Below are positions 11,248-61,510 of a stretch of DNA of 64,000 nucleotides, in pieces (the stretch's first letter is position 1; each line of letters starts with the position of its first letter). The translations under genes and the position numbers were made by a program. Below the pieces are notes generated by a model, which saw only the letters and a list, made by a program, of their open reading frames with translations, had not been told where the DNA came from and did not search any database. Source of the DNA: Magallana gigas (lineage: Eukaryota); the NCBI RefSeq assembly GCF_963853765.1, contig NC_088859.1, positions 34,596,001 to 34,660,000 on the forward strand. Direction: 5' to 3'.

Positions 11248-14236
11248 ATGCGGGGCCCCGCCGGCCTATGGCTGGTCGCGTGGCTGACCGCCGCTGTTCT
11301 GTCCTCCGCCCTAGGCCAGACTTGTCAGAGGTCGACGCTTCCTTGGCGAATAGCCGACGGAACCGACCCTGTGAAAATGGCGCGAGGAAACGTGACGGTG
11401 GTGGCGCTGCTGTTGGCCAGCTGACCTATGTGTCAGCAGCAGGCAGAAGGGTAAATAAAACCCAACGCTAAAGATCATTGTATGACATAGCATTGCATTA
11501 CCTCAAATTGTAGCAATACTATAGGCTCCTCCAAACACAGTTTCATATTTCCTTTTCTAAAGCATGTACAATTATCAGATGCAGTTATCAAAAGTTTTCC
11601 TAGACTTCTGTTTAAATGCTTGTCAATGATTATGGTAAAAAAGTGACCTGCAAAACCTTTTTTTATCTTCTTCAGAGAGCTAAGTATGATATTCTGATTA
11701 AAGTTAATCTTGAATCTTAAACACATTTTAGAAATCTGTTACCTTTATAGAAACATTTCTTTAATTTATAAAAAAACAATTATAATGACCTTTAATTACA
11801 CTTGCCAAAAAATAAAATTAAAAAAAATGAAAAAATATGAAGGGAATAAATTTTAATGTTGTTGGACTTTTACCTATATTTATTAAAATTCTTGTATTCA
11901 AGTTCAGAGTTTCATAAAACACCACAGAATTAAGTAGAGCAGTTCTATATGTTTAGAATTAAGTAGGCCCTGTGAAATACAGATTCATTAGCATATCTAT
12001 TATGTGCGTCTTTTGTCGGTCACAAACCCCGTCCCTGTTTTAATTTGATACAGATGTCACTTTCCTGACATACATATATACAATGTATTTAAATAGCCGT
12101 TCACATAAATATATCATGCAAATTTCTTTTTTGCAGAAAATAGGTTTACCGATTAGATTAATTTTTGACACGTACACCTGCACATAGCAGTAATATTTTA
12201 CTTTTTTAAATTCATATTCTAAACGACAATAACGTTTTCTTTTCATTCATTTTTGTATTACCAACATACTGAAATACTGATACAGGTAATTATATTTTTT
12301 GCAGTTTGGAAAGATTGAAGACATCATATCAACAGATAGGTAAAAGAGACATCACATTCTTAATTGTCAACCATGTCGCAGGAAAGGACTCAATTAACGA
12401 ACTGACTAGGCGAGTGTCATTTCCGGTCTACCAAGATGACCATACTTTGTCGATACAACAAAAACTCAACGCTAGCATAGACGACCTATTCCTTTATGAC
12501 AGGTACAAAGTAATACAAGCTGTGTATTAACGACAATCTTGTTCAAATTGATGCGGATTGGGGTCGTAAATATTTGATACGTATTCATAATTTGTATATA
12601 AATCAAGTGCAAAGTTTGGCCATTTGGTTTATGACTGATTACTGTACAAAAAAAAAAAAATAGTGCAATATAAAACCCCATGGCCAACTAAAATGTATAA
12701 TTAATTTATATTGTTAATAACTCAATCAATGGCATCTCTTTTTTTTCTTTTTTTTAAAGATGCAGTACACTCGTGTATCACTTAAAAAAACCTGAAAGTC
12801 TAGTGTCCCAGGGGACCATGCAAAGCAACTTGCTGACCACCTACTTAAACAACCCTTGCAATTGCACTAACAACTCTAACTCAAATGTAGCGACTGAGCC
12901 GACACCAAAAGAGCAACTAACAGGATCTGGCAGTTCACATACTTCCATCACTCGCAGAAAAAGACATATTGTAAACAACTTTGGTTCATCGTTGGTATCG
13001 ATGAACAGCGTTGTTTCTCATAACGGTCGTGTTCCAAAGTGAACTACTCATAGATGAGTTGCCATGCGTCGAAATCGAGCGCTGCGATACCTTTTGGTGC
13101 GAAGACTATGAAAATTTATTAAGAAGTATCGGTCAAATTATGAACCTCAACACTCATGTGTCTGTCCCAATCCATCGCCTGCTCTGAAACAAGAGTGCAC
13201 CTGATACGGTTATGGAATCTCAAATTCAGTCAGTTTCTGATCATGTCAAGAGCGCAGTAACACTGTTTATAGCGAATGTATTTGCAATAATTGTCCTGCG
13301 TTTCGGAGACGGCATCGTCAGCAGTTCGTAGATGATGACACCAACTGTGAACTTCTGACGAGCTGACACTGTAACCAGGAAAATGGTTTGTCGGCAACAG
13401 AATGCTCGTGACAACATCAGCTCGCGGCGTTAGAGCAACATCCGAGCTGACATTGTCACCTACAAGCAGACGATTCCTTGCAAGACTGTCAGTGACAAGG
13501 GTCTCGAGGATCCTGATCCTGACAGGAAGTTGGTACCAACATCCAGTGACAGTGACCGTCCGAAGGCGCTTCCTGTCTCTGAGAGAGTGGGTCATCAACT
13601 TGACAATGACAACAAATGCCAGTAAGAGACATTTCCTGACAGTGACAAGTAAATCCCGGGGAAACGAACTCGCAGACCTGACAATGACACCATGATGATG
13701 GCGACTGTCTTTGACAGTGTCAACAGTCTATCAACAATGTTGTCACGTGACAGTGACCCATGGGAAATACGGTTGATGCATATGTCAGCTGCTCTAATCC
13801 CAGTGCGTTGACTGGCCACTGACAATGACCGCTGGAAACAAGCAGTACGCGTAACTGACAGTGACTGAGTGACCAGTCAGGTGTTAACTCCTGATCCTGA
13901 CAAAACAGCATAGGGTCTTGACAATGACACACTGTGGACGACACTAATCTTTCTTGACAGTGCCAAGACTCAACACAGACTACCGAGACCTGATACTGTC
14001 AGACACCTGTAGACTCCACCAATGATTCTGTCTGACAGTGTCGTGCAATCAACGGGTCTTGACAGTGACAGACTCAGACCTCAGGAGGCATTGTTTGACA
14101 GGAAAAAGCCGGTCGCTCCTGAAATTGACATCCTATGTGACACTGACAAGTCAGTACCTGATACTGTCGAACAGGGACATATGACGACCGCGCCCACTGT
14201 CTTTGACAACCACAGACCTGACAGTGACAATATTAG
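11248..14236 (+). CDS. SELENOP: Selenoprotein P, copy 1 (46 Sec, 625 aa); exons 11248-11450, 12305-12502, 12760-14236
   Basis: Signal peptide MRGPAGLWLVAWLTAAVLSSALG; VVALLLAS-U-PMC (UxxC, TGA 11422-11424), cf. vertebrate VVALLQASUYLC. GT-AG phase-2/phase-2 introns join in frame to ...LNASIDDLFLYDR|CSTLVYHL (cf. human LNGSKDDFLIYDRCGRLVYHL). From 13040 the frame has 45 further TGA and no TAA/TAG until TAG 14234-14236. Total 1878 nt. Two SECIS in the 3' UTR. Confidence 0.97.
13040..14236 (+). CDS. SELENOP: Sec-rich C-terminal domain of SELENOP copy 1 (UGA2-UGA46)
   Basis: In-frame TGA at 13040,13055,13109,13202,13238,13364,13409,13448,13493,13514,13520,13547,13553,13580,13601,13607,13637,13643,13679,13685,13712,13748,13754,13820,13826,13856,13862,13892,13898,13919,13925,13955,13991,14033,14060,14066,14096,14120,14126,14138,14144,14159,14204,14219,14225; mostly in U-x-U, U-x-C or C-x-U motifs. 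Confidence 0.95.
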
Positions 14237-14441: not shown

Positions 14442-14512
14442 CGTCCTCTGTCAATGACGATTTCCAGATAAAACCCAACAGGTCTCCGGGGGTCTGATCC
14501 AATCAGAGAACG
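14442..14512 (+). promoter_or_regulatory. SECIS1 (form-2-like) of SELENOP copy 1
   Basis: AUGA 14454-14457 and UGAU 14495-14498; helix II GAUUUCC/GGGGGUC plus AGA/UCU; unpaired AAAA 14470-14473; mini-stem CC/GG; helix I CUCUG/CAGAG. Confidence 0.9.
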
Positions 14513-14819: not shown

Positions 14820-14918
14820 AATGTAGACCCTGCTATATCCGGCCATGAAATGTCACCCTGAAACTTTAAAAAGAGGGGTGGTTTTGAATAATTTGGATCA
14901 ATAGGCAGCATCTACATT
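14820..14918 (+). promoter_or_regulatory. SECIS2 (form-2-like) of SELENOP copy 1
   Basis: AUGA 14845-14848 and UGAA 14885-14888; helix GUCACCCU/GGGGUGGU; AAA 14861-14863; mini-stem CUU/AAG; basal AAUGUAGA/UCUACAUU. AATAAA follows at 14994-14999. Confidence 0.92.
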
Positions 14919-21489: not shown

Positions 21490-22530
21490 AACAAGATGTA
21501 ATTATAATTAGGGCAATTATAAAGTCTCCCGAAAAAACGAGACCATCATTGGGGGTAGGGATGACCCACATGGGTCAAACTTTACAGACAAAAAGAGTAA
21601 AGACTTAAATATTTCTATTTGTGAAATTTCATGAGGTTCCCGGGTCGTCATTTACTGTAAGTCAAGTGAACCAACATGATCTAAGGAACAAAAATATACA
21701 TGGTTTAGGGAGGGGTGATATCAACCGTTTTTCAAGATATTTGGGCACTTCCTGTTCGAGGGGAGTCAGGACTACCCAAGGGGCTTATGACCTACAGACC
21801 ATTTGATGCCCCTTAACACAATGATCAAGAATATATGTGGTTTAGGGGGGGGGTGATATCAACCGTTTTCAAGATATTGGGGCTCTTCCCGTTCAAAGAG
21901 AAGTCAGGACCACCCCCGGGGCCCATGACCTAAATAACATTTTATGCCTCTTAACACAAGGAACATGAATATATATGGTCTAGGGGTGGGGATCTCAACC
22001 GTTTTTTAAGATATTGGGGCACGTCCTGTTCAAAGAGGAGTCAGGACCACCCCCAGGGCCTATGATCTACATACCATTTGATACCCCTTAACACAAGAAT
22101 CAAGAATATATATGGTTAAAGGGTGGTGATCTCAACCGTTTTCAAGATATTGGGGCACTTCCTGTTCGCTGGGGGTCAGGACTACACCCGGTTCCCATGA
22201 CCTACATACCATTTGATGCCTCTTAACACAAGAATAAAGAATATCTATGGTTTAGGGGTGGGGACCTCAACCGTTTTCAAGATATTGGAGCACTTCCTGT
22301 TTGAAAGGGGGGGGGGGGTCATGACTACCCCTTTGGCCCATGACCTACATACCATTTGATGCCTCTTGATATAAGGAATAACAATATATATGGTTTAGGG
22401 GTGGGGACCTCAACCGTTTTCAAGATATTTGGTCATTTCTATTTTCTGGAGGGTAGGGTTGACCCAACGGACGTCAAGATCTAATAAACTAAATCATATA
22501 TAATTACCAATAATTTATATGGTCTCCACT
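21490..22530. mobile_element. Helentron/HINE-like element carrying a ~137-bp tandem array (6 units, ~21690-22440)
   Basis: CAACCGTTTT..AAGATATT recurs at 21722, 21860, 21996, 22133, 22268, 22411; AACAAGA start; short subterminal inverted repeat GAGACCAT/ATGGTCTC. Family assignment is inference. Confidence 0.65.
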
Positions 22531-29520: not shown

Positions 29521-32500
29521 GTAAGCTAGTTTCTTTATTAATAATTTTTTTGGCCTCAATAATTTTTAGGTTGTGAAGATCTTTTGATTCATTGATATTT
29601 TTTGAAAAGGTTTAAACTCAATTCATTAATCTCAATATTTCTACACCAAGTCAGACTTTTTTCCAGTACTTGTATTTGATATACACAATGCAACACTGTT
29701 GATGATAAATTATTTTAAAGTATACTATAACAAGCAATCACAAAGGTTCACTAGCTCATATCATTACACATATACGTTTGCCATTTGTATAGAATTTGAC
29801 ATAAGCTGTATCCAATGCTTCAAAGAAGAATTTTTTGCTTATGCCAATCCCCTTAGGAAATGAAATCTGAAAGTCAAGATGATACCACTAGGAAGAATCA
29901 GACTCAATTGTTAAGAAGTTTCAGACAATTATGAAATAGCTTTTTTATGATCACAAGTCCAGGTTGACACTTATTGGTCGAAACCTTTTCAAAGTTAACT
30001 AGATGTGAACAGATTACACTGACGTATGTAACTGTAATGCATAAAAAAATAGACAATTACATGAATTCCAACCACAAAAATATATATATATATATATACA
30101 CTAAATGTAAGAATGAAAAAAAGTTTTAAAAAGCGAAATGGTGAGGCATGTGAGTAATGGTGAGTAAACATATTGTACGGGAGAAAGTAAATGAGGATCA
30201 GCGGCCTCGGACGGTATTGGTCCAAGCCCCTCGGGCTTGGGCCGATACCAACCGCTCGGGCTGATACCAGGGCCGAGATAAAAAAAAAATAGTGTGATAT
30301 TCTATATATATTCACTTTTGATTTGTCTGTATTTCATACACAAAAATCTTTTGTAAAGCTATTTGAACACTATTTCTAGATTTTAAAAATATTAATCATT
30401 TTAAAAGCAGCCCTTGTTTAAAAAATGTCGTAGTTAAAATAGAGTATATAATCGATATCTTCTGCGAAAAAATAATACATTCTTGTTTCTTTACACCTTT
30501 AGATTATTTTACAAATATGATTCACGACATTTTGATTATACATGAATTTACTTCGACTTATTTGATTCCGGTAAAATGCGTTTTAACTGTCTCTTATCTA
30601 AATTTCAATTTAAGTAGTTTGCTCCATATTAAGACATTTAAACCAGTTTAAGTGTTCCCTATACCGTTTTGATAAATGAACATAATTAAACCAACCTACA
30701 TGTTCAATTGATCTATGAATAACCGGAAGAGTCCACAGCATCTATATGTCTGTATGTGGTGCAAGTGGCTAGAAAAGGATAATCTTTTAAAATCCTGTAA
30801 TTGCACCAGCGGTTGTTCTGAAATCATTTAAATATTTACGTAAACCACGGAATTGTGTATTGTTACACCAATGTGAATTGAGAATCGTCTGAAGAGCCAA
30901 GATCATTGCTAATTTTTACATGTATTTACAGATGCGCCGCCTTAAAGCTATATTGGAGTCATCATTGTTCGTGGGAGACCAATGTTCGTGGCATTCGTGG
31001 GTAACCCTTGTACACGAATTTAAATCCCCACGAACGTGTATACAAGCATTTGTTAAGATTTTTTTTTACAAAATAGAATTTGCTACCGACGAAATCACGT
31101 CCCCACGAACCAGGAAAATTTTTGGCTACCCACAATCATTGATCCCCACGAATAAAAATGATTCCACAGTGTATCACATGTTTAACGAATGTTTACAACT
31201 AAGAATTGTTTGTGATTTTTCATCAAGCTACATTAGTTAGAAATTGTCTGCAAATTATACAGTTTAATTCAAACGAATTTAAAAGAATTTAATTACCTGA
31301 ATATGAGAGTGAGGTGAAAAGTAACGGATTAGTTAGACAACTTGTATCTTGACATTTTTCTTTCAACTCTATTTCTCCTTATCTCAGACTAACTCATCCT
31401 ACGATTATTAGACTACAGAGATTATTGATATTTCGGTATCTCTTAACTGACCATCGCCATGATAAACGCTAATCTATTCTTTTAATCCGCTGGTGTTATG
31501 AAATAACATTTTCTCTTTTAGACAGATAGTCAAACAAACTTGTAATCTTAAAAACATTTTCATTTTATCCTAATTTTATCCTAATTTTCAACACTTTCTA
31601 AAAGATACATCTGATTACTTTGATGAATATTTCTTTATCACTATTAAAACTTTAAATAACATTTATTTAGTTATTATTCTATCTATCACACAATTTTTAT
31701 TAAAGGGGGTGTTGAGGTGAAAATAAGTGGTATTATGTACATGTACGCATGCAGAATTCTTCTTCAGAGGCAATTATAATATTCGGGCCCGTCTAAAGAT
31801 CAACAGTATCTGTAGAGCAAAATCCTTGTGGGGTCAAGGGGACTAATCATTTGGAAGTTCTTAATTTTTTTTTAGATTTTAAATGGGCAATGTCACGATT
31901 TTTGTCAAATATTATTTTTTTCATTTTATATTTGTTAACAATGCTTAAGAAATTTATTTCTTATGATCAACAAAAATTTAAGTGGCAGTTGTATAGTTAT
32001 AGGCAAGATATATACAGAGCTAAAAGATTTTTGTTATGTAGACAAGGTTGGTGGAATGTTTTTGTTTACATGGGTTCAACTAACCGATAAAAGTAATTTT
32101 TAAGCACATGCTTCTATTTCCTAGTTTGTATTTAACATTAATAAACAAGTAATGCAAATTGCAACTCACGATAGACTTTTTTGTAACAAATCTTGTTTTT
32201 TAACAACAACTCGATGGTTCTCTCTCTCTCTCTCTCTCTCTGAAGCATTTTTCAAAATGGAGGTTGCAAGCCCCATAACCGCCCCCTTTTTATCCGCCAC
32301 TGAATACGCTAAGTAATTTTTAAAAAACAACAACTACGACTGTGGCATAAAGATCAAACAAAATGAAGAAAAGGTAATCCCGAAAATCATAGGTAAGTAA
32401 ACAGTGTATATCTCAAAACTTTTTTGAACTAGCGTTAACATTTTTACATTATGTACTCACTTCCTTGGCACTTAATAAAACATACAAGTGCGCATACCAC

Positions 32501-34342
32501 GACAGGACATAGCACTTTTTTGACCGGAAGTGAATGCACAGACCTGGCTGGAACATAAATGTACGTTGTTATATGGTATTTATAACCCTGCAAAAGATCA
32601 CCGGTAAGTATATAGAAATCATTATGCCATTCAGTCTGTTTGTCTGCAACCTTTTTTTTTTTAAAATAACGATGTCCTGCAAACTTTAATTGTTTTAATT
32701 GTAAATGGATTCGTACTGTTTATTGTTTCGTAATTACCAACATACGTGTACAATGAATACACAAAAGTCATTTATTGTAGTAAACATTTCATTACAAATA
32801 TTACATTAAATTCATTACATATAATGTAAATGCATGAGAAGCTTAAAAAACATTCAAGTATGATTAATTACAGATGGATTCGATTGTTTTGCTACATGTA
32901 CTTCAATTATTCAACATTTTTTATATTACCCAAGGTAAGACCGCCTGACAAACTCAACTATTAACAAAATAAAGTGAATATTTTTATAGAAAAGTAATTA
33001 AAAATTAATTAGTTTGCATGACCATTTATTGGCAAGTGTAACGAAAAATGTTGACCCATGTTAAAAACTGACACAGGAGTGTTTTTTAACGTTGAAAACT
33101 GAGACCAAAAGTCGTTGAAATAATACTCGGGGTCATTTTTCAACAGCTTGATTTTTTTCTAATCTCATAATCTTTACCCGTTGAAAAATGGCCTTGTTGA
33201 AAACTGACCCCAACTACGTGTACACAGTTTTGAACTGTCTTTAAACTGAAATTTAAGGTGGTATTGAACATTTCTTAGGCACTAGATATAACAATTTCTT
33301 TAACGGAATTTTGAACTGTAATAAATATACAGAGGGGGACTGCGCCTAATAGCAACATTTACGCATGATCATCTACTTAAAGCAACAAGAGCTTCAATTT
33401 TTAATGCATTAAAAAACTGTAATTTAGTGACCAAAAAATAGTAATAAAATCGATGTAAAAAAAAGTAAAAAAAATCTATTTAGAGTTTTAAATTTAAGCA
33501 AAATTACATAATTTTTATCATGTACAACAGTTATATTGCTATAGATTAAAAAAATATCTCACAAGTTGACTTAAATATCTCACAAGTCAACATAAATATC
33601 TGACTACAGATAAAACTATGCTTCCATAATAAACAAACCGAAGATAAACTTTATAAAAAAAATTTGAAGATTACTCTTTACAATCAATCATATGCATGGC
33701 ATTGCATTCAGCTTGCATTTCCCTTTCTTCTGCGCCTGTCAAACAGTAACCGATGCTGTTGTTTTTTCTGTGGTTTCAGCGCACTGTTTAATTCAGACGC
33801 AACTCATGATTAAATACCGACAATGCATTATTCACAATTTTTTGCCAATGTGCAGACAGAATGTAAGTTTCTTTTCACGTCCCTTAGAGTTTTCTAATTT
33901 ACTGAGTCGCTGGACCGAGCAGACGTGTTTTTCACAAAGCATTTTTTGAAGGTAAAGTTAGAAGTAAAATTCTCTTATCATTATTTAAAAACACTAGATT
34001 TTGTGAACTGCATATTTTTTTTGTACTTGTAAATGCACTAAATTAATAAAATATTTTTATGTTGCACGTGACACTGTTTTTTTTTAGAAGAAAATATATA
34101 AATCATATATGAATGATAAATTCATGTACAAGTTTAATAGTGAACAAAAACGAATCAGAATCCTTGCTTATAACAGGACACTGTCATAAGATATACACAT
34201 ACTACATCGTCCGGTTTTCTAAGAATAGTTGATGACCGACTGTGTTCATCTTTGTTTAACACGTCATTAAAAAACAGTTTGAATTCAATCAATAATTTTA
34301 ATAATGATTTTTAAATTTTAAGTTTCAGTGACAAAGCTCCAG

Positions 34343-36749
34343 ATGCGGAGCCCCGCCGGCCTTTGGCTGGTCGCGTGGCTGACCGCCGCTGTTCTGTCCT
34401 CCGCCCTCGGCCAGACTTGTCAGAGGTCGACGCTTCCTTGGCGAACAGCCGACGGAACCGACCCTGTGAAAATGGCGCGAGGAAACGTGACGGTGGTGGC
34501 GCTGCTGTTGGCCAGCTGACCTATGTGTCAGCAGCAGGCAGAAGGGTAAGAACCTAAACCGAATTTAAAAAATATCAATTTCGAAGATTTTCTTTGCCCC
34601 TTCCTAGAAAATGCATTATTTTAAGATACTACACTTACCTTATGCTTAAATATACCCCCGTCTGAAATATTATTTATATAATGTGATTTCTTTCGTTTGA
34701 AGAACGAATAAGACATGGTAATTGTAATGAATGTATTCCGGAAATATAAAGTTTTCAAATCGAATACCTTTATTGATATGTTTAGTCACGCGGTTCAATA
34801 GAATCGGTTTCTTTAGGGCGACACGTAGAGATTCAGTTTGATGAGTCCAACTTATAACTTCATTTTGATATTTAATAGTGTATGTATCAGTAAATACATT
34901 AAGGCTGTTGCGTGTCGTTGCTAGTCCATTGAATGTGTTGTTGTTTTATTGCTGATTCGTATTAGAAATGAATGGGTTTTAAATGAGAATTAGTGTGTAA
35001 GCGTAATAATTAGAAATACAATTAATAAAAACAGATTACATCATGCCTTACTTGAGTCGCAATCTTCACACTCCTATTTAGCTTGTTACGCTGTCATTTT
35101 CTTGACAGTTATGTTGTACATTTATCAAATATTATGCAATTCTCGAATGCAAAATTTTAAGCTATCAACTTAATTTAATTCCAAGCCTTAAAAGTCCTTC
35201 AGTAATAAAGGATAACGCCAATTTCAGAAAAGGAAACGATTTTCATGAATCAACACTATATTCATTCTCTCAAATCAAAAAACTTACTATTTACTTTCAT
35301 TCTTTTCACAGTTTGGAAAAATTGATGACATCGTATCAAAATATAGGTAAAAGGGACATCTCATTTTTCATTGTTAACCATGCCAGAGGAGAAGCTTCTG
35401 TTAACGAACTGACTAGGCGAGTGTCATTTCCGGTCTACCAAGATGACAACACTTCGATGATACAACAGACACTCAACGCTAGCATAGACGACCTATTCCT
35501 TTATGACAGGTACAAAGTAAAGCCAATACTTTGGATAGATTTCAAAGTGAAAATCATTTCCCTGGTCGTAATAATTGAACGAAAAACAAAAAACCCAACA
35601 AACAAGAGAAAAAATGTCAATGTGACAGCAAACCTGGTTTTTCTTTTGTGTGAACAGTATCCATAATCTATTTGTCAATCCTGAATTGATAAACACTTCC
35701 TCTCCTAAGGAATGGGGGTACTATGTATGCAATATTTTGCGAAAAAAAATAACTTAGATAAACAGCTGGTATTTTTTTTTCATAAGTAATCAAAAATCAA
35801 AATCCAAGTAATATGCACATCTCTGCTCTATTTACTACTGATCTGCGTTTGGAGTATCCTTCCGACAGCCACCCGCCATTTTCTCCACTTCAATAACCGG
35901 GTTTTCCTTTTTGGAAAAAAAACGATTAAAAAGGGGCCAACATAGAAAGCCTTTTAAAAAGGCATTTGCTTACTAGAGCTAACGAGTTTTCAAATGTTAA
36001 AATTTATCAACATTTTAGTAATTATTTTTTTTTTCTTTTTTAGATGCGGCACACTTGTATATCACTTGAGAAAACCTGAAAGTCTCGTGTCTCATGGAAC
36101 CATGCAATCCAACTTGCTGACCACCTACTTAAACAACCCTTGCAAATGTACTGATAAGTTTAAATCAAAGGTTTCAACCAAGCCAACTCTATATCAACTC
36201 CAAAGACAGGCGGGCAGTTCGCTATCTTCCATTATTCGTCGACGCAGGCATGTATTAAACCACTTCGGTACATCGTTGGTGTCAACAAACAATGTTCCTT
36301 CTCGCAACGATCGTCCTTCAGATTGACCGAACAACAGATGACGCAGGCAAGTGTCTAACATAGTTGGTACACAAAATCGCGTTCCTTCAGACAATGCTCC
36401 TCAAGAATGACCGAATAGCAGATGACGCAGGCATGTGTCTAAAATAGTTGGTACACAGAATCGCGTTCCTTCAGACAATGTTCCTCAAGAATGACCGAAT
36501 AGCAGATGACGCAGGCATGTGCCTAAAATAGTTGGTACACAAAATCGCGTTCCTTCAGACAATGCTCCTCAAGAATGACCGAATAGCAGATGACGCAGGC
36601 ATGTGTCTAAAATATTTGGTACACGGAATAGCGTTCCTTCAGACAATGTTCCTCCTGTAGAATGACAGAATAGCAGATGACGCAGGCATGTGTCACGTAT
36701 ATTTGGTTCATCGTTGATATTCATGAACAACGGTCGCGTTGCAAACTAA
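34343..36749 (+). CDS. SELENOP: Selenoprotein P, copy 2 (11 Sec, 368 aa); exons 34343-34545, 35312-35509, 36044-36749
   Basis: Same exon sizes (203, 198 nt) and phases as copy 1; UPMC with TGA 34517-34519; ten more in-frame TGA (36324,36339,36408,36423,36492,36507,36576,36591,36663,36678); ends at TAA 36747-36749; total 1107 nt; both SECIS intact. Confidence 0.92.
36324..36700 (+). repeat. Coding tandem repeat, 84-bp unit (last 87 bp), ~5 units; unit U-PNSR-U-RRHVSKIVGTQNRVPSDN(A/V)PQE
   Basis: First TGA of each unit at 36324, 36408, 36492, 36576, 36663; units nearly identical and frame-preserving. Confidence 0.95.
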
Positions 36750-37253
36750 ACGGCCTGCGGATGCATTGCCCTACGTCAAATTGAGTAATATTCTGACCAT
36801 GTCAAAAGCGCTTTTTTGTCTCTTAGAGAGTGGTTCACTGCCTTAAAAAAATGAAGCAATTACCAGTACCAGTACGAGACATTTTAAGACAGTTACAAGT
36901 AAATCCCCTGGAAACGAACTCGCAGACCTGACAGTGATATTAGGATTATGGTGACTGCAATGGCAGCAGTTCATCAACACGTTACAGTGACCCCATTCAT
37001 TGATTCATATTTCAGCTCCTGTTATCCAATTGCGTTGACTGGCCACTGACAATATGACCTATTCAAACAGACAGAACGCGTAACTGACAGTGATAGGGCG
37101 ATCATGTGTTAATCCCGATAAACAGCGTAGAATCTTTCAATGTCAAAAGGTCTTGACAGTGGCAGACCCAGTCCTCGTGATGCTCTGTGTGACAGGAAAG
37201 AGCCAGTCACGCCTTTAAGTACTGTCTTTGACAACCGACAGTGGCAATATTAG
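36750..37253 (+). pseudogene. Decayed remnant of the ancestral Sec-rich domain in the 3' UTR of SELENOP copy 2
   Basis: Collinear blocks match copy 1 13043-14236, e.g. GTAAATCCC..GGAAACGAACTCGCAGACCTGACA, GCGTTGACTGGCCACTGACAAT, CGCGTAACTGACAGTGA, ACTGTCTTTGACAACC and the old stop CAATATTAG (37251-37253). About 500 nt versus ~1190 nt, with deletions and TGA changed to AGA/TTA/TGG/CGA. Confidence 0.88.
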
Positions 37254-37460
37254 ATAGCAAGATCGAACTCGTTAAATCGTCTCTACTGGTATCTACGCTT
37301 CATGATCGAGAGGCAATGATAATGTAAAGTCTGCCCGAATGTTGACGAAGGCAATACATGTAATTTTTTTTACTGAAATGTGTAATGAATCTTTACTTCC
37401 ATTTTGTATGACGCATCTGTAATCAGTGCCATGAAGATCGATTTGCTGCACATTCCGTTT

Positions 37461-37531
37461 CGTCCTCTGTCAATGACGATTTCCAGATAAAACCCAACAG
37501 GTCTCCGGGGGTCTGATCCAATCAGAGGACG
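37461..37531 (+). promoter_or_regulatory. SECIS1 of SELENOP copy 2
   Basis: AUGA 37473-37476 and UGAU 37514-37517; almost identical to copy 1; helix I CGUCCUCUG/CAGAGGACG fully paired. Confidence 0.9.
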
Positions 37532-37888
37532 GCGGGATATGTGAAATCTTCCTGATGACATTGAATTTCGAGATACTTTATACAATACATTTTATATACT
37601 TCACCCCAGTGCCATTTTCCTGAGGCCTGTTAGAAAGTAGTTTAAAGCTTTGTTAAACTATACTCTGAACTAATTTCTGAAACCTCTGTAAAATTTTGTT
37701 TTAAGTTATCAATTAAAAAAAATCAAAAAGAAATTTAAACTACCTTTCACCTCATTTTAATTTCTGTTAATAACTCCTCTTTATTTGTTTTAAGTAGAAT
37801 CTATCTCCTGTCATCATATTCTCAGTGTAAAAGTTGTAATAGTTTTATGCTTGAATGTTTTTATCAATGAGAAAAAATCATATCTATT

Positions 37889-37979
37889 CGGATCCTGCTG
37901 TATCTGACCATGAAATTTCACCCTGAAACTTTAAAAAGAGGGGTGATTTTGAACAATTAAGATAAATAAGCAGTATCCA
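37889..37979 (+). promoter_or_regulatory. SECIS2 of SELENOP copy 2
   Basis: AUGA 37910-37913 and UGAA 37950-37953; UCACCCU/GGGGUGA helix; AAA motif; CUU/AAG mini-stem; AATAAA at 38062-38067. Confidence 0.9.
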
Positions 37980-40657
37980 CATAGCTACGTTTTTTCTCTG
38001 TATGATCAGTGTACTAGTACATGTATTTCTTTCCAACGGCAAAAATGTTGTATACTTGAAAAATAAAGATAAAAACTAACAATTGCTTTGTGTAGATGGT
38101 TTCCTTCAATAATCTGTATTTTATTCCTGCGAAATGAGTGTACAACTTGGGACTACATCCAAATTAAGTTTATGAGGGCCATATGCAAATTACATAGGGG
38201 TTATTAATTAGACTGATATTTCTTAAATTCAAACGAAAAAATGCAAAGGAGCAAAAATATTACAATTTTGATAGAGGCTTACATGCTATTATAATACACA
38301 AGCTTTAAGTAAAGAATAAATACAATTCGTGAAAAATATGGTCCCTTATCAAATCCATTGCAAAGTGTACTTGAAGTAGAGATTAAATTTAGTCTTATTT
38401 GAATGAAATATGCAGAACCTGTAAAAATAACCAAAGAAAGCTGCTTTCATCCTTTTTATTTGCCCCTTAAATAATGAATACAAATACATTGTGTTTGTAT
38501 CTAAAAGCACATATTATCTTACATTTAGTTACAACACATCTCATCACTATTATACAGTCTTACAAGATTCAAGAGAAGATATTGATAAATTTCAAAAAAT
38601 ATACATGATATGCACGCTATACACAGAACATTTTCAGATTCATTTAAAAAATGGTGATGTCTAAATATATAGAATTATATTACACTTTCAATGCATTTAA
38701 ATACAATGCAGTTCTTGTTATAATTTGTATTATTATGTAACTATGTATTTCACTCATACACACTGCACTAAAACAACCAAGAAGTCTGAAGCTGAAGGAA
38801 ATTTAAGATGTTTCCATTTTGTTGATAAAATCACCGTACAAAATGTACATGGGACTAGAAAATTTCATCATTAAGTGGGTATAGGGTCACAATTAATGCA
38901 CGTTTACTGGTACATAATGAAAAAAAAAAGATGTCTTCGTGCATCTGCAAATCTCGATGACCCCAAAGAATGCAAGCATTTTATAAGTAGATTGTTTCTT
39001 AAGTATATAAATTCACCTGAATTGATTAATCTTGACATCATTCTTTATGCCAGATACCATGTTACAAATATGTAATAGCCAGTATTTACAACAAATCAAA
39101 ATTGAAAAATTTCATTAAGGAGGCTAGGTACAGTCAACAAATAAACCATCAGATCGTCCTTAAGGTAGTCCTATACTCGGCAGTAAATGGTCTCAATCAT
39201 TGGAGGCTTAGCTTTAAAAGACAGATATGCATTATAGCAAATTGAATACATGCCTAAGAAATCTGTATGTTTACATGCTAGATTTTTTGTTATCACCTCT
39301 CAGAAAGGTGTACCCCCTTGCAAATATCATTAACAATGACGAAATTTGCCAGACGTCCATTTTTTCCTAAAAAAATTATTACCAATTTTGGGGAAATTAG
39401 AACTGGATATACAAAATGGAGTACGAACATTTACTTAAACCATGTCACATCAAAATTTTTGTGCAAGTTGTTTGAGTAAGTATCCTTTAAGGGACTGATG
39501 CATCAAAATAAAATACAAAAAATGTGATGCTGGTATCGTGTGTGGTCATTTTTTATTTTTTCATGGACTCAAACCTAAATTCATGGTGTTTATTCTGTAG
39601 AATGCATCTTAGAAAAAGATTTGGTAAAATAAACCATAGGTTGACGGATTACTTTTAAGGCCATAAGTTCTTAACCAAAGAGACCCTAAAGAAAAAATCC
39701 GTAAAAATCACATTTTACTACAGTTTTCTGCAGAGGTATGTCAATAATGTTGGATATTGTTTAATCATTAATTAATCATTGCTTAATTAAATATGAATTA
39801 GCTTCTGTCTCTAAATTTTAACCGGTTTTATTAAAAAAAGAGAAAAATTCGGGGCGGGGGGACCCATCAAAACAAAGAATAAAAGCATACCTGTGATCAT
39901 GGTTAATTGAAAATTTCGTTTTTCATTTTACTCTTACAAAATCGAGTTTCTCAACATTTCATTTCTATCTCTCATACAATACATACATTACCATTCTAAT
40001 AGCTAATTATTGTCATTGTTTACAACAGGGATGCATAGCAAAATCAATACCGGGTATCTAAATCACTATGTAAAATTCGAACCAAGATTGTAAAATCCAT
40101 ATTATGACGTAGTGTGATACTGGGGCTACTTTAAATTTTTAAAAAATGATTTTTCATAAGCTGTAAACTTTTGTTTGGTAAAGAAAAATTCCATTTACTT
40201 TTGCTTTAAAATTTGAATACTTTCTCATATCTTTATATAAAGCTCTTCTTTTTAGAGTTATAGAATGATAAAGAGTGCAGTCTATAGTACCACAGAATGT
40301 GAGAAATTGGACAAAAATTGCTTTAGAGATATTCATACAACGTTTCTTCATGTATAGCCATAATAGGGATTATCATCCTTTTCAAATAAAATCATCGTTA
40401 AAGATATTCATACAACATTTCATATGTATATCATGTAGAGGTTATCACCCTTTTCAAATTAAACCACTGTTTTTCACACCTACACATGTATCAACCATAC
40501 AAAGTTTTGTAAAAATATATATGATAAAAGCATTATCAACAAAATTGGGGGAGGGGAACTTATAGATAAAAATAATGGAAAATTCAAATGAATTAGTAAA
40601 TAATGAACTCAATACACACAAAAAATTATATCATTTTATGTTGACTACACCTAGTGT

Positions 40658-59406: not shown

Positions 59407-60784
59407 GCTTTGTATAAAACTTGCTTTTGATGATAGTGTCACAAAATACACAATCTACTATTAATTTGATACATGCAGTGAATTTGAGAGGCCGTGACGG
59501 TGGTAAAGCTCGATTATAGGGAATTGTTATGTGTATTATATACCTTTTAACTCCACAAAGGGCATGTGTATGTTTATTTGAGAGCTATTGACCATCACTG
59601 CGCTGTAACATTTTGAATCTTCAGCTGCTATTAAACGATCTTTAACCAGGTTAAATGCTAGAAATCAATGGATTGCAGTGTTTCTATGGCGACAAAATAT
59701 GTAGTTGCAACAGAAGAAATAAACCCGTAAAAGGAAACCAAGCTTTCTTTGTACAGGCTTTATGGACACAATCACCCATTATTTGCAAGTCAACTAAAAA
59801 ACCCCACCGAAAAACTGGAATGTATATACACGTATACAATATCATAGATACAAAAAACCCCCAAAACAAAATGAATTTTGATTCAAATTTATCAGGTCTT
59901 TTGTTATAACATGCATGATTAAATGCAGTAACAATATTCTTCGACAAATTAGTGGAGAACCTTGTATACAACTGCTTCAACGCAGTCGCTGGATGTTCTA
60001 AATAAAAAACAATAACAGAGAAAAGTACAAATAAAGTTCATAACTAGTTCTTGTATTAATAGATAGTAAATAGAGAGTGTATACACTCTCTGCGTTTTTG
60101 ATTTAACAAGACAAACAATCACTATGATTTATTGATGTTCAATACAAGTTTAAACTTCCCAAAGCGAAACGTATAAAAGCACATTACACTGTGCTTTGTG
60201 TGTACACTGAAAATCAATGGCTCGGGTTTATATCAAATATTGATATCAAGTTTCAGTCGTTGCGAAATTTCCATTTTATGCTTCATACACAAAGATGAGT
60301 TAATTTTTAAAAGAAATGCAGGATATCACATAAAGATCTAGAAAATCCTATTATAAAATTTGAATCTGTTTTGCTAGTTGCATGCATGAGAGATCCTAGT
60401 ATGTGCATCGATTTCAGAATACTGTCATAGATCAATGGTAGGCATATTCTGGATAAATACTAAACAAATATTCAACAATAGAGGTAAAGGTTGCCGTAAG
60501 CTTTGCCATCTAGTCATCCTGATCATCTGTATTATAGTACAAAAAGATCTGTAGTGACGGGGGGACCATCGATGTATCCTAAAACTCACTGAAATGCAAA
60601 CAAAACCAAATAAACAATCAACAAACATCCTAACAAATTAATACCTTTTTCTGATAAACTATAAAACACGCAAGCTGTTGGTACCAGAAAATGAAACAAA
60701 TTTTAATATGACTATGTTTCATTATGACATACTTAGTACTTTGCATGTCATCACATTAAGTAACGAACCTACATTGTACAAGAA

Positions 60785-61510
60785 AGCTGCATGTCATCAC
60801 ATAAGGTAGCAAGCCTGTAAGTAAGCTACAAGTCATCATATTAGGTAGCAAGCCTACGAGTAAGCTACAAGTCATCATATTAGGTAGCAAGCCTACGAGT
60901 AAGCAACAAGTCATCATATTAGGTAGCAAGCCTACGAGTAAGCAACAAGTCATCATATTAGGTAGCAAGCCTACGAGTAAGCTACAAGTTATCATATTAG
61001 GTAGCAAGACTACCAGTAAGCTACAAGTCATCATATTAGGTAGCAAGCCTACATGTACAAGTAAGCTGCAAATCATCATACAGTGTATTAGGTAGCAACC
61101 CTGTAAGTAAGCTGCAAGTCATCATATTAGGAAGCAAGCCTATGAGTAAGCTACAAGTCATCATATTAGGTAGCAACTCTACAAGTAAGCTACAAATCAT
61201 CTTATTAGGAAGCAAGTCTACGAGTAAGCTACAAGTCATCATATTAGGTAGCAAGCCTACGAGTAAGCTCATCATATTAGGTAGCAACCCTGTAAGTAAG
61301 CTACAAGTCATCATATTAGGTAGCAAGACTACCAGTAAGCTGCAAATCATCATATTAGGTAGCAAGCCTGCGAGTAAGCTACAAATCATCATATTAGGTA
61401 GCAAGCCTACGAGTAAGCTACAAATCATCATATTAAGTAGCAAGCCTACAAGTAAGTTACAAGTCATTATATTAAGAAGGAAGCCTACAAGTGGGTTGAA
61501 AGTCATCATA
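60785..61510. repeat. 39-bp minisatellite, ~18-19 units
   Basis: Consensus GTAAGCTACAAGTCATCATATTAGGTAGCAAGCCTACGA. Confidence 0.93.

Follow-up and report, generated by a model that had tools for sequence, protein, structure and literature searches.

We found that a 64,000-nucleotide stretch of the Magallana gigas genome (NCBI RefSeq assembly GCF_963853765.1, contig NC_088859.1, positions 34,596,001 to 34,660,000 of the forward strand; hereafter the window, in whose own numbering all coordinates are given) holds two tandem genes for selenoprotein P (SELENOP), copy 1 at 11248-14236 and copy 2 at 34343-36749, both on the plus strand. The second gene, copy 2, is spliced and polyadenylated, and its single reading frame contains 11 TGA codons, ten of which lie in a tandem array near its 3' end. 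We conclude, with a probability of about 0.68, that copy 2 is a functional transcribed SELENOP tandem paralog and that the UGA-C codons of its tail are read as selenocysteine (Sec, or U in peptide motifs) up to a TAA stop codon.

Gene structure and transcription of SELENOP copy 2

Copy 2 comprises three exons with GT..AG introns and is read in one frame, with one in-frame TGA at 34517 and ten in exon 3 (Table 1). The ten tail TGAs are at 36324, 36339, 36408, 36423, 36492, 36507, 36576, 36591, 36663 and 36678, and no TAA or TAG occurs before 36747. Exon 1 encodes an N-terminus that is hydrophobic and resembles a signal peptide (some 23 residues up to A-L-G, as read from the translation), followed by the start of the SelP_N domain. 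A database protein that is 98% identical to the copy 2 residues after the first Sec (P0004) matched Pfam SelP_N (PF04592) with 72 bits against a cut-off of 23.2, and exon pieces of the window matched profile positions 4-36 and 118-174. This protein corresponds to UniRef A0A8W8KDB8 and RefSeq XP_011427856.1, 'selenoprotein P-like [Crassostrea gigas]', of 167 aa, and runs exactly from the first Sec to the first tail TGA, so that the public annotation of copy 2 is a fragment. The two genes are the only SELENOP loci in the genome, and the copy 2 repeat is unique genome-wide. An earlier interpretation made from the letters of this DNA (the sequence-only reading) had described a tandem paralog 23.1 kb downstream of copy 1 with 11 in-frame TGAs, a retained UxxC domain and both selenocysteine insertion sequence (SECIS) elements. 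The start codons are 23,095 bp apart, the frame has 11 TGAs, and the TGA at 34517-34519 stands in U-P-M-C within a gene matched by SelP_N; the description proved accurate on these points, and two SECIS-like elements are present as well.

SECIS-like elements of both genes were detected with the Rfam model SECIS_1 in E-value mode. At the gathering thresholds, Rfam reported no SECIS anywhere in the window, because all four elements score below the SECIS_1 gathering score of 35. The copy 2 pair is homologous to the copy 1 pair and has the same scores. SECIS 1 is identical between the copies at 104 of 106 positions and SECIS 2 at 91%, the latter with its core kept and with a compensatory change from C-G to U-A in the lower helix. 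All four elements fold as stem-loops with an AUGA/GA core, and the AUGA..AAA..GA features are present.

Four sequencing runs were mapped to 34100-38500, among them raw stranded polyA reads (X21) and assembled RNA contigs (X1 and X2); of the words sampled from 36044-37600, at least half occur in each of 20 runs from 14 studies, RNA included. First mates of X21 lie on the minus strand, which in most stranded libraries denotes plus-strand RNA. The X21 depth was zero in the intron bins outside a repeat-like stretch of intron 2, about 33-36x over the array and 7-53x over the 3' untranslated region (3'UTR), and the coverage stopped at ~38070, directly after AATAAA. The junction 34544>35311 (GT..AG) was crossed by 66 X21 reads and by an X1 contig of depth 461, and the junction 35507>36042 (GT..AG) by 4-5 X21 reads and by contigs of depth 617 (X1) and 8.8 (X2). 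Contigs of X1 had depths of 500-1200 on all exons, contained no unique intron sequence and covered the array over the spans 36116-36389 and 36585-37412. Lack of expression had been named beforehand as an outcome that would speak against the gene; what the RNA reads contain is a spliced, polyadenylated copy 2 transcript.

Reads of copy 1 also map to exon 1 of copy 2, which is 97% identical, and could thus be used to compare the two copies. Reads of X21 that join the own 5'UTR exon of either gene (33886-33951 in copy 2, 10766-10795 in copy 1) to the exon 1 acceptor, reads across the exon 1-2 junction and reads at the diagnostic base 34408 gave copy 2 to copy 1 ratios of 35:31, 66:78 and 79:89, respectively, and both genes are therefore about equally abundant in X21. 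In X2, copy 2 reached a few per cent of the copy 1 level.

Two local irregularities were seen in the RNA coverage. Over 37628-37774 the X21 depth was 0.4x, compared with 18-44x in both adjoining bins, and the X1 contigs had a depth of 313 there; either the X21 allele is different or lacks this segment, or the adjoining signal is partly copy 1 cross-mapping at the SECIS blocks. In intron 2, the stretch 35570-35863 had low X21 coverage with first mates on the plus strand, opposite to the copy 2 reads, and in X1, X2 and X13 it was covered by contigs whose flanks are unrelated; its appearance suggests either a repeated element or an antisense transcript.

Origin and variation of the tandem array

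Tandem Repeats Finder called an 84-bp unit with 4.4 copies and 92% matches at 36320-36694. Each full unit has R-R-H/Q-V at its start and U-x4-U at its end, and the units align with the copy 1 segment that reaches from the multibasic RKRH motif to the second tail TGA. Of all the units, the partial u5 at the end is most like copy 1. Its TAA lies opposite the first TGA in the copy 1 tail, and where copy 1 has its following TGA, copy 2 has TGC. Beyond this TAA, blastn aligned copy 1 13619-13895 with 36869-37119 at 75% identity and copy 1 14049-14114 with 37143-37208 at 80%, with deletions in copy 2, and the remnant is interrupted by TAA or TAG in all three frames. The 75-80% identity, the deletions and the stops in every frame indicate that the ancestral U-x-U tail of copy 2 is dead and part of the 3'UTR. 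It had been proposed that the ten distal Sec codons come from five 84-bp units rather than from the U-x-U tail of copy 1, and that the unit derives from the copy 1 segment RRKRH...RVPK-U-TTHR-U. The alignments bear out both the exclusion of the old tail, which is cut by TAA at its first TGA, and the source of the unit, a copy 1 stretch that leads up to the first two Sec codons of the tail and takes them in; five units do supply the ten TGAs, but 'five 84-bp units' is a simplification, the lengths being 84-99 nt with the partial u5 in addition.

All oyster SELENOPs retrieved have a multibasic motif (RRRR, RRKR or RKRR, then H or A) ahead of the Sec tail. It was located at 12949-12963, at 36231-36248 and at each unit start in the window, and in the proteins P0002 and P0006-P0011, and R-U-R-R recurs at every unit boundary of copy 2. 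Judged by its residues, the motif may be a proprotein-convertase site.

Relatives of copy 2 were obtained by protein searches of Logan contigs and from database entries. The closest include L006, a genomic contig ~94-97% identical to the window, whose array is u0+u1+u5 with four tail TGAs, and L004, a transcript contig with the copy 2 5'UTR exons, whose array consists of a u0/u2 hybrid, a TAG, a u4-like unit and u5. Reads of X21 show a 183-nt in-register skip, as in the u0/u2 fusion of L004, together with a 99-nt back-join, and X2 has a u0-u0 arrangement. The units are in frame and number two in L006 and L004 versus five in the window, as in a coding minisatellite, and because the unit number differs among variants, the Sec-codon count varies with it. 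The expansion to five units is recent and is not common to the other variants seen.

A more distant oyster, with ~84-87% nucleotide identity to the window, is represented by L007, L008 and L009 and by the proteins P0005 and P0048-P0052. Its copy 2 has u0+u4+u5 with four in-frame tail TGAs and the same TAA and TGC; six protein variants keep the four TGAs and five share the stop. After the TAA, its old tail (L008:764-1250, and L009) is 84.5% identical to copy 1 with many TGAs still in frame, and has two extra stops followed by a frameshift, being far less decayed than in the window. The shared TAA and the shared u0+u4+u5 place the truncation and the first unit duplication before the species split. 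The proposed loss and regain of a Sec store thus stands as regards the lost tail and the rebuilt array, but the regain is modest and unstable, with only two units in the related species, L006 and L004. Likewise, the two genes do draw their tail TGAs from different segments, as in the idea of separately evolved designs, but an array of five units is one of several structures that occur among the variants. In a search limited by length and shared words, proteins of Saccostrea echinata and Ostrea edulis ended like copy 1 and the C. virginica protein ended differently from both copies, and no copy 2-type tail was found in these species.

Divergence between the copies is uneven along the gene. The exon 1 region 34316-34549 is 97-98% identical to 11221-11454 (blastn 97.4% over 11220-11454), and the synonymous divergence (dS) from copy 1, which is 0.04 in exon 1, reaches 0.71 in exon 3. 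The ratio of nonsynonymous to synonymous divergence (dN/dS) of copy 2 against copy 1 was 0.35 in exon 1, 0.47 in exon 2 and 0.35 in the exon 3 pre-tail part (0.43 for the whole pre-tail sequence). These values point to an old duplicate whose 5' end has undergone conversion, and not to a pseudogene. Some copy 2 variants (P0012, L004:736-934) have a mosaic exon 2 in which the second half or the whole exon is copy 1-like, and a cluster of differences at 35448-35470 in RNA contigs falls within signs of conversion at 35440-35475; ongoing gene conversion between the SELENOP copies is evident from these patterns. A tree of the N-terminal domain placed both copies inside Crassostrea/Magallana, branching after Saccostrea and Ostrea, with copy 1, copy 2, C. 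virginica and two more sequences in a polytomy, and hence gives no duplication date. The copy 2 design itself is older than the species split, for which dS is ~0.22-0.25.

Decoding of the tail and competing explanations

A TGA-to-TAA change, older than the separation from at least one further oyster species, cut off the ancestral long Sec tail. The segment just upstream, which carries a multibasic motif along with the first two Sec codons of the tail, was tandemly duplicated and now behaves as a coding minisatellite with units of 28-33 codons, whose number would be set by unequal crossing-over. We propose that ribosomes decode UGA-C as Sec with the help of SECIS 1, which is conserved, and that termination takes place at the TAA. 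The product would be a secreted protein with 5 to 11 Sec according to the variant, and might serve alongside the 46-Sec copy 1 as a selenium carrier or store of small and variable size. Judged from the conservation of the frame and of the TGAs, the chance that the UGA-C codons are decoded as Sec through to the TAA is about two in three.

Much of the evidence on decoding also bears on a different and rather unlikely explanation, namely that copy 2 encodes a single-Sec SELENOP like teleost SelenoPb, so that translation ends at UGA 36324 and the array is a 3'UTR minisatellite with inherited TGAs. Small indels argue for a translated tail: all five in the tail were multiples of three (15, 3, 3, 12 and 3 nt), versus 1 of 11 directly after the TAA (Fisher p=0.0014), and 252 nt of tail compared between the window and L008 contained 0 indels of other lengths where 3.9 were expected (P=0.02). 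Across 11 unit copies from four sources, 22 of 22 TGAs were unchanged, whereas variation was seen in 55% of the remaining 78 aligned columns (P ~0.008-0.02). Every TGA of copy 2 stands in the weak termination context UGA-C (11/11, and 35/46 in copy 1), and the TAA is conserved between species as the end of the open frame. Two SECIS are kept, whereas SelenoPb genes keep one, and a ~125-nt block around SECIS 1 is near-invariant among copy 1, copy 2 and the copy 2 of the distant oyster, with clearly more divergent flanks.

Other observations weigh against decoding through the array, and several of them are what a single-Sec protein would predict. The tail dN/dS between species, 0.52, is close to that of the exon 3 pre-tail part (0.55), but the non-coding control after the TAA gave 0.57, 1.11 and 0.67 by frame, and the identities between the window and the other species are alike (86% in the tail, 87% in the pre-tail part, 86% at the intron end and 83% after the TAA). 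Because the non-coding control gives similar values, the tail dN/dS was rejected as a sign of purifying selection and dropped as evidence. Unit lengths divisible by three keep the frame automatically through gain and loss of units and need no selection to hold it, and the strong polymorphism in array structure and copy number is also expected of a neutral 3'UTR minisatellite. Disruptive variants exist as well: L004 has an in-frame TAG directly after the second tail TGA, and one variant of the distant oyster has a different C-terminal end, probably from a frameshift. The copy 2 SECIS matches lie below the Rfam gathering score, as do equally those of copy 1, and some of the SECIS 1 identity could stem from gene conversion. 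In the public annotation, the protein stops at UGA 36324. A recoding-stimulating hairpin was sought in the units, which showed no excess stability (z-scores +0.2 to +0.7).

The lost and decaying ancestral tail, the disruptive variants and the fast exon 3 (dS 0.71 against copy 1) could instead mark copy 2 as a transcribed duplicate on its way to becoming a pseudogene, with tail loss as the first step and the repeats as neutral debris. We consider this very unlikely: neither the other species nor any variant has lost the start codon, splice sites, UxxC or frame, dN/dS lies at 0.35-0.47 across the three exons, conservation extends to the SECIS elements, the mRNA level is comparable to that of copy 1 in X21 and X1, and the design has persisted since before the species split. 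It is scarcely credible that copy 2 or its five-unit array is an artefact of assembly, whether through collapse or expansion of a repeat or through tandem placement of an alternative haplotype. Short-read contigs cannot count units, and the unit number differs in other variants; the exact count of five in this individual is the only point resting on the assembly alone. In exons 2-3 the copies themselves differ by 13-27%, their introns do not align and each has its own 5'UTR exon. Moreover, the 20 runs noted above contain sequence specific to copy 2, the u0-u1 and u3-u4-u5 junctions recur in independent contigs, and another oyster species has an orthologous copy 2.

The reading that we favour, a functional paralog with a decoded tail, can be extended to a bolder proposal that we hold to be unlikely. 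Given a furin-like multibasic site at each unit start, the array could, speculatively, be processed into di-Sec peptides; copy 2 would be a Sec-coding variable number tandem repeat (VNTR) with heritable variation in selenium load, and the array a polyprotein cut at R-U-R-R, which derives from the pre-tail RRRR/RRKR motif, into ~28-residue U-x4-U peptides. Unequal crossing-over would then yield alleles with 5 to 11 or more Sec within one species, and SELENOP would here be used in another way than through one long Sec tail.

Table 1 Positions of the SELENOP features in the 64-kb window
Feature	Position	Strand	Remarks
Copy 1	11248-14236	+	exons 11248-11450, 12305-12502 and 12760-14236; 625 codons, 46 in-frame TGAs
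SECIS elements, copy 1	14446-14508, 14836-14899	+	Rfam SECIS_1, 29.3 and 26.4 bits
Two more upstream exons, copy 2	32219-32603, 32867-32934	+	only in one transcript contig
5'UTR exon, copy 2	33886-33951	+	transcript contig L004, 98.5% match, runs on into exon 1
Exon 1, copy 2	34323-34545	+	acceptor ~34322; coding sequence 34343-34545 from ATG 34343
First in-frame TGA, UxxC (U-P-M-C)	34517-34519	+	identical codon at identical position in copy 1
Exon 2, copy 2	35312-35509	+	middle of SelP_N domain
Exon 3, copy 2 (coding sequence)	36044-36749	+	pre-tail part and tandem array
Exon 3 pre-tail part	36044-36242	+	SelP_N end and linker with multibasic RRRR at its end
Coding tandem array	36243-36749	+	ten in-frame TGAs
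u0	36243-36341	+	99 nt
u1	36342-36425	+	84 nt
u2	36426-36509	+	84 nt
u3	36510-36593	+	84 nt
u4	36594-36680	+	87 nt
u5, partial	36681-36749	+	69 nt, ends in TAA
TAA stop, copy 2	36747-36749	+	aligned to first tail TGA of copy 1; present in related oyster
Remnant of decayed U-x-U Sec tail	36750-37208	+	now 3'UTR; blastn against copy 1
SECIS 1, copy 2	37465-37527	+	Rfam SECIS_1, 29.3 bits; within ~125-nt near-invariant block (~37411-37540)
SECIS 2, copy 2	37901-37964	+	Rfam SECIS_1, 26.1 bits
AATAAA polyadenylation signal, transcript end	38062-38067	+	RNA depth ends in bin 38069-38215

Elsewhere in the window, a mir-124 precursor match lies at 479-549 on the plus strand (Rfam RF00239, full-length model, 57.3 bits versus a gathering score of 49). 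A tRNA-like Rfam match at 9445-9518 on the minus strand (36.3 bits) was not called by ARAGORN and is probably a tRNA-derived repeat (short interspersed nuclear element) and not a tRNA gene. Two further, larger tandem arrays, at 21683-22429 (137-bp unit, 5.4 copies) and at 60777-61510 (39-bp unit, 18.6 copies, 189-bp higher-order period), are unrelated to SELENOP.

Comparison with known SELENOP genes and coding repeats

Processive UGA recoding has its main model in SELENOP, and among invertebrates the main test case is the 46-UGA oyster gene. Baclaocos et al. reportedly described this Pacific oyster SELENOP with 46 Sec codons in 2019 (J Mol Biol 431:4381), and we take it to be copy 1 of the window. 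Later reviews give 46 Sec for oyster SELENOP, matching the TGA count of copy 1, and also cite '32 selenoprotein genes'. The suggestion that the paralog had not been described needs qualifying: copy 2 is present in RefSeq and UniRef as the 167-aa 'selenoprotein P-like' fragment. Text searches for a second oyster SelenoP and for Crassostrea 'selenoprotein P-like' returned nothing relevant, the 2019 oyster SelenoP paper lying outside the search. In practical terms this is an annotation error, as the databases have only the 167-aa piece between two UGAs.

The locus pairs a 46-UGA gene with a similarly expressed sister that has the same promoter-proximal exons, near-same SECIS and 4-10 tail UGAs in simple repeats. 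It thus offers a natural comparison for the number of UGAs served per SECIS pair, for the role of the UGA context and for the loss and rebuilding of Sec tails. If the tail is translated, copy 2 would be an example of within-species variation in the selenocysteine number of a protein.

Copy 2 resembles copy 1 in its three exons, signal-peptide-like N-terminus, SelP_N domain with UxxC, pre-tail multibasic motif and two homologous SECIS. The tail of copy 1 spans ~400 codons, 45 of which are Sec codons that mostly form U-x-U pairs, whereas copy 2 has a TAA at the first tail Sec and ten TGAs arranged as U-x4-U in copies of the pre-tail segment, in a number that varies among alleles. Duplicates of SELENOP are also known in fish, with SelenoPb (sepp1b) in teleosts and four SelP paralogs in salmonids (PMC6301783). 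Like copy 2, teleost SelenoPb is a SELENOP duplicate that lost the Sec-rich C-terminus and kept the UxxC domain. SelenoPb has one Sec and one SECIS, whereas copy 2 has two SECIS-like elements and an open frame across 4-10 more TGAs; the 'selenoprotein Pb-like' names that NCBI gives to oyster proteins are automatic labels.

Coding VNTRs of secreted proteins share with copy 2 in-frame units in an allele-dependent number, and copy 2 shows hybrids of unequal exchange, such as the u0/u2 fusion. It differs from other coding VNTRs in having two UGAs per unit, which would need SECIS-dependent recoding; no VNTR that alters the number of Sec is known to us. Among bivalves, SELENOP tails with up to 132 UGAs are cited in the literature, and these Sec-rich tails and copy 2 are alike in that the Sec content of the SELENOP tail shifts greatly between lineages. 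Unlike the long bivalve tails, copy 2 combines a change within a lineage with a short tail and with a coding repeat of variable copy number on top of a truncation. The SELENOP family and the fish duplicates that lose the Sec tail were already known; what copy 2 adds is a tail that is truncated and partly rebuilt from a different segment, with a Sec-codon array that is copy-number-variable among close variants.

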